From: Guillardia theta CCMP2712
Lineage: Eukaryota; Protista; Cryptophyta
DNA length: 64,000 nt
Assembly: GCF_000315625.1 (NCBI RefSeq)
Contig: NW_005434563.1
Span: 155,387-219,386, forward strand
Direction: 5' to 3'
The notes beneath the pieces were generated by a model, which saw nothing but the letters and a program-made list of their open reading frames with translations, was not told the DNA's origin and ran no database searches. Positions 2,835 through 14,533 of the stretch are shown one piece after another. Position 1 is the first letter of the stretch. Every line of letters starts with the position of its first letter. The translations under genes and the position numbers were made by a program.

Positions 2835-5731
2835 CTACAAAGCTTTCTGATCCGACGGCAGAGCATACTCGAAAGGTTTCCCCGGCTTGCTCGTCAAGCA
2901 CCAGTTGAAAGTCGACAGGTACGCCATAGCGACTATCAGGTGCTTTTGTCGCTTCTCGGTCGACGAGAACTCATTCAAGTATAGCTCTCGCCGAGTCCTG
3001 ATCTTCGCCCAGATCTTGTAGGGCCCATCTTGCTTGTCCCCCGGTCCCCACTTCGCGTTGATCTTCCGCTCGAAGTCCTTCACGTCCGTCGGCCTCTCCG
3101 AGGACTCGAGGAGCTTCTCGACTTCCTTGCTCCTCATCAGCGTCTTGAAGTCTCCGGCTATCAGCTCCGCCTCCTTCATCAAAGCCTTGCCGACCTTCAC
3201 CACGTCCTCATACTTCACCTTGCCCCTCACGTCCTCCCACGTGTCCCCCGGTAAGATGTTGTCAAAGGGCTTGAGAGCCTCCGACAGCTCCGGCTTGTCG
3301 AGGAGTACGGACAAAAATCGTTGTTGTCCCTCTCGAGAAGAAGCCGAAGAGACCGAGGCAGTAGAGGCTTGCGAAAGGGCTGACTCGCTCCCAGCAACAG
3401 ACCGAGCGTCACTGCTCCGAGAGTCCGAGTGCAAGGCAGTAGAGGCTTGTGAAAGAGCATCGCTCCCAGCAACAGACTGAGCGTCATCGCTCCGAATGTC
3501 ATCAGGGTCTCCGAGACGTTTTCCACCTAATGACATCATGGTGAACTCGGAGGCGGCTGGCGGTCTTGACTGCAGGAGAGAGCAAGTCAGTCAACTTCAT
3601 CGCCTAGCTGCTTTCAGCTTCACTCGCCTCCTCGATCACCCTCAGGGGCTGCTTTCCCCATCCCGCCGACCCTCCCGCCGCCTGCTGTCCTCGCTTCTGT
3701 GGGGGTACGTACTTTGCTACTGGAGGGGTTGGCCCCCCGCTCTCCTTCACCTCGAGTCGCAAGTCAGTCAGCTCGCAGCCCCTCCTCCTCACTCTCTCTC
3801 TTGCGGGCACTACCGAGAGCTTCTTCAGCTCCTCGCTGACGTGAGAGTCGACCTCCTGCTCTCGTCCCAGGACTGTCAGCGCCCCTGCCCCGGCAGCCAA
3901 CGTTCACGTTAGTCATCAGCATCTTCCCTCATCAGCATCGGCTCTCACCTCCTCCCTCTAGTGTCTTCAACACCACAAAGCCCACCTCGTCTCCTCCTAC
4001 GCCTGCCAGTAGAGATCGGAGCTGCTCCGCCTCCTCCTTCTCAAGACGCTCCTCCAGCTCCCCGTGCTCATGACTGCCAAACACCCACCCACTGCTGCTC
4101 ACCCACGTTCGAAACCTGCCCTCCGTCTGCTCCCGCTCCCCCCCCTCCTCCCCCCCCTCCTCACTCTCCTCGTCCAACGTCGCCCTCACTCTCTTAGCCA
4201 GCGCCACGGACAAGCAGGCGCAGCTGAGCCTCGTCATCTTCAGAAACGTCACGAAGCTGCCGGTCTCGACCACCCGCGACAGCACGTGCACTGCGAGCAG
4301 AGGGCTCAGCCTCCCGTCCTGATCTGCCGTCATCTTGTCCCTGAGGTACTCCTCTGCTTCGTCTAGCGCCTCCTCCTCCGTCATGTCGCCCTCGTAGAAG
4401 TCTCGAAGCCGCACGTCCTCCTCCCACAAGCGAAGCTCTGACCTCGCTTCCTCGGGCATGTGCGAGAGCGACCTCCTGATCTCCTCGCGTACGGCAAAGT
4501 CGATCGCTGCTACCGCCGTCTTGCCCCTGGTCGACGTCTCGTAGGTCTCTTGTACCCACTGCTCTAGCTCCTCCGACCGGATCTCGTTCCTGCTCATATG
4601 ACCGTTGACAGCCCTGATGAGGTCAGGACCAAGCCTCTTCTTCGATCGCGTCTGGTAGTATCTGCGAGTCGCTTGAGTCCCGTACCTCGTCCCCTCGTAC
4701 CTCAGGAACACCAGCACAAACATCGAGCACACCCGCCACCGCGGACTCTCTTCTAGCAGGCTGCCAAGACTCTCCTGTAGTAGGCCTAGGATGCTGCTTC
4801 GAAACGCGTCTGCTCCTGTCCCAGCTGCTGCAGGGCTGTATCCAGCTACGACCTCTGCTGCAGGGCCCGGGCTTGTCGGCCCTGCTGTTGGATCCTCAAG
4901 CCTCCTCGAGCTCTCCGCGACCCTCCTCGCTCCTTGTTGTATCTGCTGGATGTCTCTTGGGACCGTCGGGTCCGGCCTGATACACAAGCCCTCCGGGATG
5001 AAGACAGTGCAGAACGATACTGCCACCTGCTCTCTGCGGAGACTTTCAAGCATAGCATGCTCGATGGCCTGCTTTAGCCTCATGTTCCGCGCGAACATCC
5101 CATGCTCCTTGTCGAGAAGGTCCCTGAGGAATGCTGACTCATCATCTGCTCTCTGACCTCTGCTGCATGACAAGAAGAGCGAAACTTTCATGCTCCTAGT
5201 CCTGTTGGTTCTCTCTGATTCGATCCTCTCCCTCCCTTGCGCCTCGTCTCTACACGCGTCTATGATGACGAGCAGAGGAGGTAGCCCTTCCACGTTCTCT
5301 GCCCCCGCAGCCATGGCGCTCAGCGCATCTCCGACGGTCACCCTACTCCCTCGTGTCTCCTCTGACACCTCCGGCCTCACGACATCGCATGTCAGCATTG
5401 CGATCTCACCCGAGCTCAGCTGTATAGCATGCCCGGCATAGAACACTAGCATCAGCTCCGGTCGCTTGGTCTGGCAGTCCATGGCGAGAGAGGAAAGCAT
5501 GTCTAACATGGACTGTCTCGTCGTCGGGTTGGCGAGGAAGGAGGAGGAGCAGCCCGGGCTGTCTTCCAGCTCCCTATGTATCCTACGCGCATCTTTGACA
5601 GCCTCAACCAATGGTGCGATATGCGTGTAGGCATCAGCTCCTATGCAGAGAGCCTTGACATGTCGAGTACCTCGCATTTCACTCCGCTCAGCGTGCCTGA
5701 GAGATTGATTATTGATAGATAGATGGAACAA
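2835..5731 (-). CDS. Spliced caspase-like (peptidase C14) multidomain protein, copy 1, apparently intact
   Basis: KALCIGADAY...DARRI...VFYAGHA...IIDACR (His/Cys dyad) plus a p10-like FLSCSRGQRADDESAF. Intron 3948-3885 (GTGAG...GACTAAC...CAG) joins in frame to GALTVLGREQ. An acceptor ending at 3570 joins in phase 0 to the 2835-3539 ORF. First ATG in the large exon is at 5677, and an upstream exon is possible. Confidence 0.85.
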
Positions 5732-6360
5732 AGTAACATGTGTCTTTCATGGTAGATGGAACATGTCTCTCACAGTCTATACAAATGAATAGCGTCAGCA
5801 TGAGCATGAGCAAAAGCTTTGTGTAAGGCTCCTACTTGAGAAGATGCTCTAGTGCGTTCTCTTTTCAGGACTATCTCAGATCATCTCCTTCCTTACTACC
5901 TTCCCTGCTTCTCCTCTCCTCCCTTCCACCAGCATCAGCCACGTTCCCACAGCCTCCTCTTTGCCTTCCTACGAAGAGCCCGCGACCAGATCACCCCACC
6001 ACCACCTGAGCGGATTCCATCTTTCATCACCCCCTCGTCTATGCTTATTAATACCCCTTGCAAGCGACCCTTTCTCTATCACAAGGGGTACCCGTAACCA
6101 TCGGGTGCAGAACATGAATAAAATTAGCTAGCGTTTTCAGGATTTTTCCTAGTTCAAATCCCTGCCCGCAGGATTTTCCTGAAATCACAAGCTTTGTTAA
6201 AACTATTTTATATGCGAGGAATCTGAGTACCCCTACTTTTGTGTTGAGCTCACAAGGGCGCTATCTTAAAACTTTCAAACCCTTTATACAGGCCCGCCTC
6301 AGGACTTGTCGGATTATTCTGAGGCGGGCCCACTGAGGCCTGCTAAACCTTTAATTAAGC

Positions 6361-6860
6361 TTGAATCCTACTCTGAGCGCACATTTATTTCTTTGTGGGA
6401 TGGAAGCGCAGGCTGAGAGACAAGTTGAAGATGAAATGGAGGAGGTAAGCCAAGTAGAGTCTCCGAATGTCAACGAGGATCAAGGCGATCCTTTGGAGGA
6501 CATGCAGGTCCAGGAAGCAGTTGTAATTCCAGGACAGGCCACCGTGACACCGAGGCCTCAATTCGGGGGCCGAAGAAAACGTCAGAGAACAGGTAACGAG
6601 GCCCGACAACCATTGGATGCAGCTCGTGGGCGTCAAAGAATCTCAGAAATCCGATCAAAGAGGGTTCCGCAAAATTCAAGAGCTGCATATACATCTAGTA
6701 TTGTCCGTTTCATACAGTTCGTGTCACATCGAAACAATCCTTTTCTATTGACAACGGAATTCAAAGATTTGATTGAAAGAGATATGGAAGAAGGAGATCC
6801 ACCATTACCATCGAAGAGGATCATACGAATGGTACTGGACGAGAATTCTGTTGGTCAAAG
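6361..6860 (+). pseudogene. Truncated ORF, possibly the N-terminus of a Crypton-like tyrosine recombinase, cut by the retroelement
   Basis: Acidic N-terminus, NLS-like RRKRQR, then RVPQNSRAAYTSSIVRFIQF, which resembles the N-terminal helix of Crypton/Ndc10-type recombinases. No catalytic residues are visible. Confidence 0.3.
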
Positions 6861-10222: not shown

Positions 10223-11190
10223 CTACAACGCTTTCTGATCCGACGACAGAGCATACTGGAAAGCACGGGACCAGTTGAAAGTCGACAGGTACGCCATAGC
10301 GACTATAAGGTGCTTTTGTCGAGTCTCGGTTGACAAGCGCTCATTCAAGTATCGCTCTAGCCGAGACAGGAAGCACTCCGGCCTGTTGCTGATCTGCGTC
10401 CAGATCTTGTAGGGGCCTCGTTCCTCCATGTCCTTCGGCCCCCACCTCACGTTGATCTTCCGCTCGAAGTCCTTCACGTCCGTCGGCCTCTCCGAGGACT
10501 CGAGGAGCTTCTCGACTTCCTTGCTCCTCATCAGCGTCTTGAAGTCTCCGGCTATCAGCTCCGCCTCCTTCATCAAAGCCTTGCCGACCCTCACCACGTC
10601 CTCATACTTCACCTTGCCCCTCACGTTCTCCCACGTGTCCCTCGGTGAGATCTTGTCAAAGGGCTCAAGAGCCTCCGAGAGTCCGAGTGCAAGGCAGTAG
10701 AGGCTTGTGAAAGAGCATCGCTCCCAGCAACAGACTGAGCGTCATCGCTCCGACTGTCATCAGGGCCTCCGAGGCGTTTTCCACCTAATGACATCATGGT
10801 GAACTCGGAGGCGGCTGGCGGTCTTGACTGCAGGAGAGAGCAAGTCAGTCAACTTCATATGTGAAAGTACGTACTTTGGTACATGCCCCCCCGCTAATCT
10901 TCACCTCGAGGCGCAAGTCTGCTCTCCCTCCCTCCCTCCCTCCCTCCCTCCCTCCCTCCCTCTCGCTCTCTCGCTCTCTCCCTCCCACCCTCTGGCTCCC
11001 TCCCTCCCGCCCTCCCCTCCCCCCCCCTCTCTCTCTCTCTCCCTCTTTCCCTCTCTCTCGCTCTCTCTCTCCCTTAAAGACTGCCAGAGGGGGCTCAGCC
11101 TCCCGTTCTGATCTGCCGTCATCTTGTCCTTGAGGTACTCTTCTGCTTCCTGCACCTCCTCCTTCCAGTCGCCTCATCGCCTCGTCCTCA
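10223..11190 (-). pseudogene. Internally deleted fragment of the caspase-like gene (copy 3): C-terminal exon plus a piece of the middle domain
   Basis: Contains EAEEYLKDKMTADQNGRLSPL and VRGKVKYEDVV...AMAYLSTFNW. A 136-nt deletion relative to copy 1, between CTCCGA microhomologies, shifts the frame near 10678. No caspase domain. Confidence 0.85.
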
Positions 11191-11469
11191 CAGCGCTCCT
11201 GTTGCATGGATTAGTCTCTACGCAGACTTGCGAGCTCGCCTCATTCACTCGAGCCTTCACTGCACGTCCGCCTCAGGTGTACCGAGCGGCAGATCTACCA
11301 TGACAGGAGCTCTAGGTCAACTTCAAGCTCTATTACAAAGAATCGCTGTCCTTCAGCCCGGTCCCAAATAGAGCCTCTCCAAAAAGAAGTCGTACCCCTC
11401 ATCATCCCCTACTACTACTGGGAGAGGACCCGTGGTATCCGTACACAACATCCTTTCCCACCAGCCGCC

Positions 11470-14400
11470 ATGAAGCGCAGGCTAGCAGAGGCATGGTCGG
11501 GTTGGTCCCTGAGAGGAGATGAGAAGCGATCAAGATCCGAGGAAAGCGGTGGAAGCGGCAACCGAGGAAGCATCGTCTCTGCCGATGACTTGCGTGCTGG
11601 ACGCAAATATGACCTGCAGAATCAAGCGAGAGAGCTCGGGCTGATCCTGACACCTCAAGGTCGATACGTCCTCGAGGCATCGAGTCGTCGCAAGTTCTTT
11701 GCCTCGAGCCTTCCCTCCGGTCAGATCCTCTGGGAGACCGACGAGCAAGTGGACGGAGAGGACGTGGAGGAGATCCTCGTGGCCATGACCCGACTAGATC
11801 AGTCCGTCCATGTCAACACGGGCACTCACGGCACTGCAGACGGAGAGCTCAAGACAGCAGGAGGAGAAACGATTGACTTCTTTCGAGAAGACTTTGAGAG
11901 CATCAAGAAGCTGGAGGAGAAGGCGAAGGTGTCGCTGCATCAGGTGACCTCTCAGAGCGGGCCTTACCTGCCTCTCAACGCCAACATGGTCATCAACGGC
12001 TGGTGCTACAGCCATCGGTACGGCTTTGCGAGCAAGGTGGACCTCAACACGGGCAGGATCCCGGAGGACAAGCACGTGGAAGGGACGTACTGCAACCTGC
12101 CGAAGCGTCTGCGGGAGACGATCAAGAGCTCGCTGGGAGACGAGGAGGCGGTGGACGACGCCATGGGCTGCTACTTGGAGACCAACTGCACGGACACAGA
12201 CCCCGAGGTGAGAGTGACAGCAGGGGAGCGCTCGGGAGATCTTCTCGACCGCTTCATGCAGGACAAGCAGAAGCGCGTGCTGGTGCTGCTCGGGTACGCG
12301 GGGGCGGGCAAGTCGACGCTGGTGAGGAGGTGGGCGATCGAGAAGGGAGAGGCATGGAAGGAGGGGGAGCCGTATCCAGTGTATCTGCATCTGCCGAGGT
12401 GCAGGAGCGTGAAAGCGTACATGGAGGAGGCGGCAGGAGTATGTTTCGGAGGCGAGGAGGCATGGCGAGGCTTCATCAGGGCACGATCGTTCTTGGTGGT
12501 GCTGGACTCGTACGATGAGATAGGGGAGATGGACAACGTGGTGGCGAAGGTGATGAAGGAGCTCGCGGGCTGCCGGGGAGTGAAGGCAGTCCTCACTTGT
12601 CGGAGCGGCTACTTGCAGAAAGAAAACGCGTCTAACCCGCTCCTCTGGCCCCCGGGTACGGGAGGACAAGACGCTGTGCAGGTGGCTTGGGTGTGTCCGT
12701 TGAGTCTGAGGGACGAGGGTCGTGTCCGCCGGTACATTGAAGCGCACGCGAGGTCATCGGGCAGGGACTGGAGCAGCGAGAGGTGCAAAGAGGGGATGAG
12801 GGCGGTGCAGGAGCTGCGAGATGTAGTGAGCACGCCCTACTCGTTGAAGGTGCTGCTTGTCGCGCTTCCCCGGCTACAGGAGAAGAAGAGGAGGAGGCCG
12901 AGCTGGACCATCTCACGGCACAACATGCACAAGGAGTACGCCAAGGAGTGGTACAGGAGAGAGTGGGAGAAGCTGGCGCAGAGGCAGGAGCTTGCAGAGC
13001 AGGCCAAGCAAGCGGGAATGAGAGACGGGAACTACATGGAGTGGTACTCACGCGGGGCCAAGCATGTCTGTCTCTACATGCACAGAGAGCAGAGGAAGCA
13101 TGTCGTTCTCAAGGAAGGCGACGGCTTCTCGTCTGTCGCTCCTTTCAGCTTGCGGATGAGAGGAGGCGACGTGACGCAGCAGCTGGGGTACTGGCTGCTG
13201 CGCGGCAGCCTGACTCGCGTGAAGCACAACAAGCGAGAGGGCAGTCTGGAGGTAAGCTTTGTCCACGACCTGTACCGGAGCTTCTTCCTTGCGGAGGCAA
13301 CCTTGGAGGAGCTTCGGAAGAAGGAGGACGGGCAGGCGGACGAGGCTGTGCGAGTGCCAGCGAGTCTGTCGGTGCGAAACCTCCGAGGCGAGGTCGAGAC
13401 GATCAAGGAGCACGCCATTGTCGTGCAGGGCAAGCGCAAGTACCAGGAGAGGCTGTTTGACGTCATGAGAGCCTCGCGGGAGGACGGAAGCGAGGAGACG
13501 GGGAGGGCGTCAGCGAACGCGGCTACGATCTTGGTGGCAGCGAGCGTGAGCTGGTCGGGTCTAGACCTGTCGGGTGTGCGAGTGGCAGGGCAATCTTGAG
13601 GAACGGCATCTTCCATCGGACGGACTTGAGGTGGGCTGACCTGCGCGGGGTGGACGCGAGCCACGGATACTTTGTGGAGACGCGGCTGGAGGGAGCGAGA
13701 CTGGAGGGAGCTGACTTTGGGGAGAGGGCGACAGTGAGGATCGAGTGCAAGGAGGTGAGATGCGGGGCGTTCGAGCCCGGGGGGATGACTCTAGCAACAG
13801 TGTCGGAGGACGGGAAGATAAGGGTGTGGAATGTGGAGACCGGAAGGTGTGTGAGGGAGCTTGGGAGGGGAGGGGAAGAGATCGATATGATTCGATGGAG
13901 GGCTGACGGGAAGAGGCTGGCGTCGGGGTCGAGGAGAGGGAGGATAAGGGTGTGGGACGTGGAGACAGGAGGATGCTTCCTTGACCTTGAGAGGAAGGAG
14001 GAGATAGGGGAGATAGGCTGGGTGGGGGACGAGAGGATCGCTTGGTGGACGCACAGGAGGGAATACTGCATGCAAACAATGGACGTGGAGCTGGGAGTGT
14101 GCACTCGCGAGCACAAACTTGAAAGGGCTGGGAGACACTCAACACGTTTTGGGCCTGAGGGGCCCGACGGGAGGAGGCTCGCGGGCGTGTCGGAGTCAGG
14201 GGGACGGGTGTGGGTGTGGGATGCAGAGACGGGGAGGGGCGAGGAGCTGCAGGAGGGACCCGAGGGAGGAGTGAGGGGGGCTGAGCTGGGGGCCGGACGG
14301 GCACACTGTTTACGCGGCATATGTCTAATGGGTCGATCAAGACTTGGACATTGAGGGATGAAGGCTTGTTTCTTCTCACAGCTGATTTCAATCGAAACGA

Positions 14401-14533
14401 GAGAGAGCTTGTGTGTCGCTATGCTTCAATCGACCAGTCGCTCTCCAGCCCCGTCAGACGCCTGCTGGAGGAGAGAGGAGCCGTCGCTCAGGCTAACACA
14501 CCAACCAGAGGCTCGTGGTGCTGTGTACAGTAG
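11470..14533 (+). CDS. Intronless NLR-like STAND protein: His/Cys protease-like N-terminus + NACHT + pentapeptide repeats + WD40; frameshifted in the 3' third
   Basis: Walker A GYAGAGKS, Walker B FLVVLDSYDE, sensor VLTCR. ASANAATILV...SGLDLSGVRVAG leads into pentapeptide repeats, then WD40 repeats (IRVWNVETG, IRVWDVETG) and a terminal LLEERGA. Single-base frameshifts at ~13589, ~14278 and ~14320. Confidence 0.9.

Follow-up and report, generated by a model that had tools for sequence, protein, structure and literature searches.

Both NLR-like proteins with swapped enzymatic N-termini and Tox-HDC as a predicted family are already known. Tox-HDC was defined from a toxin of the APSE phage by Zhang et al. 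2012 (PMC3482391), who described the motifs SGxH, D/N, and an absolutely conserved C, predicted a Rossmann-like sandwich resembling caspases and flavodoxin, and proposed as its activity "a thiol peptidase or a transglutaminase". This is the only searchable paper that names Tox-HDC, and the label "protease" is a prediction from 2012 only. Classical members occur in proteobacteria and the APSE phage, either as the C-terminal tip of a secreted toxin of the polymorphic or RHS type or as a small protein on its own. The situation is different in the window analysed here, a stretch of 64,000 nucleotides from the cryptophyte alga Guillardia theta CCMP2712 (contig NW_005434563.1, positions 155,387 to 219,386; G000:C111:155387-219386 in our locus naming, in a genome of 87.1 Mb and 669 contigs), where an open reading frame (ORF) on the forward strand carries a Tox-HDC-like domain at the N-terminus of what would be an intracellular STAND NTPase. 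Judged by its predicted domains, the gene is a member of a cryptophyte-specific NLR-like STAND family in which a Tox-HDC-like domain is followed by a NACHT-like NTPase, then by pentapeptide repeats, and finally by WD40 propellers. On balance, we favour the reading that this family uses Tox-HDC as its output domain and is of bacterial origin, and that the sensor of the copy in the window is broken. The fusion of Tox-HDC with STAND/NLR proteins, its expansion in cryptophytes, and its recurrence in bacteria are described in no searchable paper.

The proteins most similar to those of this DNA come from Guillardia theta CCMP2712 and Hanusia phi, a member of the sister genus. From end to end and without introns, the ORF is collinear with residues 1-701 of the H. 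phi transcriptome protein P0001 (61% identity), which fixes the start codon at ATG 11470. The GC content at the gene is 57-62%, similar to that of the flanking DNA. The ORF and the features of its N-terminal domain are:

11470-13599, forward strand: NLR-like ORF of 709 aa (ATG 11470, stop TGA 13597-13599), containing a leader, the Tox-HDC-like domain, the NACHT-like NTPase, a helical region, and the first pentapeptide repeats
11575-12069, forward strand: Tox-HDC-like domain as modelled by AlphaFold (aa ~36-200)
11719-12018, forward strand: match to Pfam PF15656 (aa 84-183)
11818-11832, forward strand: TGTHG loop after a β-strand, with the candidate catalytic His120 (codon 11827-11829)
11878-11892, forward strand: FFRED motif at a helix start, within DFFRED, with Asp141 (codon 11890-11892)
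11929-11943, forward strand: VSLHQ in the middle strand, with His157 (codon 11938-11940)
11998-12012, forward strand: GWCYS, within VINGWCYS, with the candidate nucleophile Cys179 (codon 12004-12006)

The segment of the ORF that carries His120 reads VHVNTGTHGTADG. A first-pass annotation of this DNA had pointed to a Tox-HDC-type His/Cys domain in front of a NACHT, and its letters and coordinates for the His, DFFRED, and Cys motifs are exact; a P-loop follows downstream. The domain lies where it was placed (11680-12030), but its extent was underestimated, as the confident fold in the AlphaFold model is larger and spans about 11575-12069. Upstream of the Pfam model, the domain has an N-terminal extension of ~45 residues with a conserved DxL...GL pattern, which is also present in the bacterial relatives.

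PF15656 is the sole Pfam family that matches the N-terminal part of the ORF. With a gathering cut-off of 21 bits, residues 61-210 score 24.5 bits (E 3.3e-5), and the excised residues 1-260 score 22.5 bits; an NCBIfam scan of the ORF matched nothing. Because the Pfam score is borderline, we also compared the domain by way of its paralogs, a wide family profile, and profile-profile alignment. Eight of the 11 intact paralogs found in the genome match Tox-HDC on their own (E up to 1). When a profile of the 11 paralogs was run exhaustively against 1.84 billion representative proteins, it retrieved 168 proteins at E <= 1e-3, of which 77 reached E <= 1e-10, and in a set of 90 wider relatives 31 reach PF15656 alone (best E 6.2e-8). 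As a reference we used undisputed Tox-HDC sequences from gammaproteobacterial genomes, which score 47-62 bits to PF15656 and have close relatives named Piscirickettsia salmonis. Aligned by hhalign, the 90-sequence clade and the bona fide Piscirickettsia Tox-HDC match over 113 columns with 96% probability (E 3.9e-9), and the motifs fall on each other: TGTHG on SGSHG, FFxED on FFxxD, and CYS on CYS. Taken together, the Pfam matches, the paralogs, the family profile, and the hhalign result indicate that the domain is a genuine, although divergent, member of the Tox-HDC superfamily, and the assignment made in the first-pass annotation is thereby borne out at the level of sequence profiles. A feature search of the ESM Atlas returned unrelated PQQ/BamB clusters only, with low recognition.

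The domain thus shares with Tox-HDC an [ST]GxHG loop, an FFxxD helix start, a CxS motif after a strand, and a Rossmann-like α/β fold. The cryptophyte and bacterial clade to which it belongs differs from the classical members by the ~45-residue extension, by a histidine (His157) near an invariant Asp position, and in that roughly one third of its sequences reach the Pfam model alone. Its signature can be written HINTGTHG...FxxED...VSxHxVS...AWCxS. In bona fide Tox-HDC the second invariant Asp (V-I-D) lies within one residue of the position of His157, the hhalign register being off by one there. Candidates for the D/N motif are this V-I-D Asp near His157, Asp141, which is kept in 78 of the 90 relatives and falls on the invariant Asp of FFxxD, and position 176, which is D or N in 78 of 90. 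A polymorphic-toxin context does not apply to the ORF: no RHS or secretion domain was found in the Pfam and NCBIfam scans, and the domain is N-terminal in a STAND protein of cytoplasmic type.

Thirteen positions are invariant in the 11 intact paralogs: H114, N116, T117, H120, G121, E140, D141, H157, N172, N176, W178, C179, and S181. Among the 90 relatives, N116 (88), G118 (87), H120 (87), G121 (86), G125 (85), W178 (85), C179 (88), and S181 (84) are nearly invariant, while S155 is kept in 78 and H157 in 61. The proposed His and Cys are therefore conserved in homologs. The ratio of nonsynonymous to synonymous substitution rates (dN/dS) of the N-terminal domain, with the copy in the window compared against its paralogs, is 0.24-0.37, which is indicative of purifying selection on this domain. 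By the Pfam match of the excised domain and the retention of His and Cys throughout the family, the set of motifs is non-random.

A model of residues 30-215, computed with AlphaFold (AF2) from an alignment of 80 family members, has a predicted local distance difference test (pLDDT) score of 92.7 and a predicted template modelling (pTM) score of 0.88; with the alignment of the 11 paralogs the pLDDT was 82. The model shows alternating β-strands and α-helices in a Rossmann-like sandwich. His120 is placed in a Gly-rich loop directly after the strand 83-88, and Cys179, with the conserved Trp178 and Ser181 nearby, two residues past the strand 144-147, where a short helix begins (strands in model numbering). 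A nucleophilic cysteine is typically found in such a position, between a strand and the N-terminus of a helix. His157 closes the strand that lies between those of His120 and Cys179 in the model. Asp141 is found in a helix, and not at a strand end as predicted by Zhang et al. 2012 (PMC3482391). A homodimer prediction gave a score of 0.00; this method did not use the alignment and was uncertain about the fold, and we regard the result as neutral evidence.

No clear structural match for the domain model was found in the PDB, and the best rows are weak. The first-pass annotation had suggested kinship with the caspase-hemoglobinase clan, in which case the domain would be a clan CD protease with induced-proximity activation of the kind seen for caspase-9 on the apoptosome. 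The order of the motifs, with His-Gly and Ala/Gly-Trp-Cys following hydrophobic strands and His preceding Cys, agrees with such an enzyme, and the fold predicted in 2012 was compared to caspases as well as to flavodoxin (PMC3482391). Since no clan CD chain, be it caspase, metacaspase, legumain, or gingipain, is present among the 50 best structural matches of either of two models, membership in the clan is unsupported, and we consider this explanation quite improbable. The analogy to the caspase-type effectors of apoptosomes and inflammasomes is limited to the presence of His-Gly and then Cys at strand ends, and to the plausibility of activation through oligomerisation; no kinship in fold or sequence was detected, and the domain is fused to its NTPase rather than recruited by it. 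A different possibility is that the enzyme depends on its Cys but has a substrate other than protein, for example a nucleotide, cofactor, or lipid, similar to the TIR, SIR2, and PNP effectors of other NLR-like systems. Depletion of metabolites is common among STAND effectors, and the nearest structural rows, although weak, are small-molecule enzymes and phosphatases. We find a non-protein substrate unlikely: no structural match is significant, and the sole published prediction is that of a peptidase or transglutaminase (PMC3482391). As for a phosphatase of protein tyrosine phosphatase (PTP) type, this candidate was rejected for lack of the C(X)5R motif and of conservation at Arg183.

Downstream of the Tox-HDC-like domain, the ORF encodes the following NTPase elements:

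12274-12618, forward strand: NACHT-like STAND NTPase core, with both Walker motifs
12292-12318, forward strand: Walker A, GYAGAGKST
12496-12519, forward strand: Walker B, VVLDSYDE

The NACHT score of the copy in the window, 21-24 bits, is under the cut-off of 26.7. In the family, however, each of the ten NTPase regions examined matches PF05729 (best E 1.2e-9). A profile search of the PDB also brings up NLRP chains. Read from these profiles and the Walker motifs, the NTPase of the copy in the window is a divergent NACHT-type STAND module. The automatic Pfam annotation of a Guillardia protein already shows both Tox-HDC and NACHT domains.

The protein query matches 14 places in the G. theta genome; at 11 of them the N-terminal domain is intact, and two or three are broken copies. 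The 11 intact paralogs are located on 11 other contigs. Six of them were followed over their full length, and each is a single ORF encoding 1453-2120 aa. Domain scans of four of these gave the order Tox-HDC-like domain, P-loop NTPase, and many WD40 blades, with pentapeptide repeats where checked. Four proteins of the family (P0001 and P0005-P0007) are found in the transcriptome of Hanusia phi, and the family is accordingly expressed in the sister genus. The broken copies are at G000:C44:476709-477118 (L012/L013) and G000:C90:38039-38188 (L014); an in-frame TAA and a frame change disrupt one of them, and of the other a fragment of 96 aa is left, from which the TGTHG loop has been lost.

These data also bear on whether the locus could be bacterial contamination, or the motifs a chance occurrence in non-coding DNA. 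The nearest relatives outside the cryptophytes are indeed bacterial, but the contig is longer than 200 kb in an 87-Mb genome, its GC content at the gene is like that of the surroundings, and the leader (11458-11642) and the WD40 part have 88-89% DNA identity to a nuclear paralog. Together with the paralogs on 11 other contigs and the related transcripts in H. phi, this refutes an explanation that we regard as having practically no chance of being correct. The claim that a eukaryotic protein carries a Tox-HDC domain in front of a NACHT-like STAND NTPase stands. The further remark that this is an unusual architecture has to be qualified, as the arrangement recurs in at least 11 paralogs, in H. 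phi, and in NACHT and NB-ARC proteins of bacteria.

Outside the cryptophytes, several long members of the family have the Tox-HDC domain in front of different STAND scaffolds:

P0034: Tox-HDC, then NACHT-ankyrin, on a bacterial-type contig
P0033: Tox-HDC, then NB-ARC-TPR, on a bacterial-type contig
P0036: Tox-HDC, then NACHT-HEAT, metagenomic
P0070: Tox-HDC, then NB-ARC-LRR, metagenomic

The placement on bacterial-type contigs covers only P0033 and P0034, and the precomputed Pfam lists of these two include PF15656. Neighbouring genes on their contigs encode IS66 TnpB, Fic, helix-turn-helix (HTH), and group II intron maturase proteins. At L017, the gene for P0033 has as neighbours genes for a Fic-domain protein, an HTH protein, and a group II intron maturase (1563-2537, 5825-6391), surroundings reminiscent of a mobile or defence island. 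Recurrence on varied STAND scaffolds, as found for Tox-HDC, is what characterises an effector module. The domain also stands alone in bacteria of a kind that lives with or inside protists.

A genome search, for which a trimmed alignment of 18 sequences served as query, located the HINTGTHG clade, among genomes that carry a name, in a metagenome-assembled genome (MAG) of Simkaniaceae, in further MAGs of Chlamydiota, and in one gammaproteobacterial and one Bdellovibrionota MAG. Where named, the non-cryptophyte holders are thus mostly Chlamydiota; one NCBI protein is labelled Anaerolineae. An unrooted maximum-likelihood tree was computed from 100 domains, and the 15 that come from cryptophytes are united in one clade among 85 others (Shimodaira-Hasegawa-like approximate likelihood ratio test, SH-aLRT, 99). 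A single cryptophyte clade is consistent with one acquisition followed by expansion, and its position within a far larger family, most of it bacterial, fits a bacterial origin of the cryptophyte family.

The overall layout resembles that of the fungal HET-E/NWD proteins (Podospora) and the bacterial NACHT/Avs proteins, which likewise combine an effector, a NACHT module, and repeats, and have undergone lineage-specific expansion. Further likenesses to the fungal and bacterial STAND proteins are the closely similar tandem WD40 units, the mosaic paralogs, and an effector that is swapped between NACHT and NB-ARC scaffolds. The differences are the effector itself, Tox-HDC, and the host, a cryptophyte alga. 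PADLOC models of known defence systems gave no match.

The carboxy-terminal part of the gene in the window differs from that of the intact paralogs and has these features:

13545-13720, forward strand: pentapeptide repeats (Pfam Pentapeptide match), broken by a frame change at ~13589
13596-14533, forward strand: remnant of the WD40 sensor and C-terminal tail, with WD40 matches in two further frames and the final stop at 14531-14533

Compared with the intact 1214-aa paralog on contig C52 (88-89% DNA identity past 13400), frame-changing indels are found at ~13589, ~14275, and ~14306, and one WD40 unit of 42 aa is missing. The first indel is a single base in a region where the C52 paralog is otherwise collinear, and leads to the stop at 13597-13599. 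As a consequence, the repeat sensor is not in frame with the NTPase in the window, whereas the two are encoded in one ORF in the paralogs. A short intron at ~13589 was considered and rejected, as no GT-AG interval restores the frame. The occurrence of three separate frame changes makes decay of the sensor likelier than an assembly error.

What remains in frame comprises the effector domain and the NTPase, both open and with conserved residues and P-loop intact. From its reading frames, the copy in the window is probably a paralog in decay, or else a truncated form without a sensor. We assign even chances to the stricter alternative of a functionless pseudogene, a fossil of the family. The three indels and the lost WD40 unit, judged against such a closely similar intact paralog, would agree with this, as would the two or three further broken copies in the genome and the fact that no gene model of the ORF appeared in the protein search. 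Arguing for a remaining function are the 709 open codons with every conserved domain residue in place, and a Tox-HDC-NACHT protein that lacks a sensor could still act; the indels are also possibly errors in the assembly.

For the intact members of the family, we propose that the N-terminal Tox-HDC-like domain would be the output module of a receptor, in which the WD40 repeats may sense a ligand and the NACHT module would oligomerise and thereby cluster the N-terminal domains. Once clustered, these could be switched on as a Cys-His(-Asp) enzyme by way of Cys179 and His120, and would then damage proteins of the cell itself or of an invader. The likeliest reaction would be that of a thiol peptidase, or of transglutaminase/deamidase type. 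The output role, the oligomerisation trigger, and Cys/His chemistry on proteins are what we infer from the architecture and the conserved residues. The family was probably acquired once, from bacteria of a kind that lives with or inside protists, and expanded thereafter.

Several observations weigh against the interpretation that we favour. The full 709-aa ORF scores 20.3 bits to PF15656, slightly under the cut-off of 21. Sequence searches of the PDB, made both for the domain itself and for its profile, returned noise only and no Tox-HDC structure, and the searchable literature holds no assay of any Tox-HDC protein. The direction of transfer is inferred from an unrooted tree in which most relatives are metagenome proteins. 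Finally, the three frame changes by which the sensor of the copy in the window is broken could be assembly errors.

A wider proposal, which we put forward as tentative and rather doubtful, is that Tox-HDC constitutes an unrecognised and widely shuffled output module of STAND/NLR proteins, as in the bacterial NACHT and NB-ARC fusions, that cryptophytes took it from Chlamydiota-like associates of protists and expanded it, and that it acts as an oligomerisation-triggered cysteine enzyme for cell death or attack on invaders. If true, this would be an independent, non-caspase route to the logic of the apoptosome and inflammasome. Hardly any work has been done on NLR-like receptors in protists. For the response of an alga such as Guillardia to intracellular bacteria or viruses, the family is a concrete and testable candidate, in which a known kind of receptor scaffold would have an unassayed enzyme family as its output. 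Because the domain is common to NACHT and NB-ARC scaffolds and to stand-alone bacterial proteins, its chemistry would shed light on the toxins and STAND systems of bacteria and, at the same time, on an immune-like family of a eukaryote. It would also provide a clean case of a toxin domain that moved between bacteria and a eukaryote and was then reused.

Some additional observations concern the relationships among the paralogs. The gene in the window is a mosaic: its leader (11458-11642) and the segment 13400-14600 share 88-89% DNA identity with the C52 paralog (L034), while the whole alignment of 11575-14301 to that paralog has 75% identity only, and the Tox-HDC domain is nearest to the paralog on contig C62 (75% at the amino acid level). 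This pattern suggests that paralogs have exchanged sequence by gene conversion or recombination, as in fungal and plant NLR families. The C62 paralog itself (L024), an intact gene for 1646 aa, has many tandem WD40 units of 126 nucleotides at ~3250-5700, with 81-86% DNA identity to the unit in the window, and these resemble the concertedly evolving repeats of fungal NACHT-WD40 (HET-E/NWD) genes. On contig C52, the public gene model P0003 (GUITHDRAFT_141136) of 1055 aa includes part of the N-terminal leader a second time and treats the pentapeptide region as an intron. The genomic sequence nevertheless has one uninterrupted frame of 1214 aa, and the model is probably wrong at this point. Upstream of the gene in the window, the stretch 10824-11210 is of low complexity, with SLPP/PPSL repeats on one strand and GGRE/RERE on the other, and is probably a simple, non-coding repeat.

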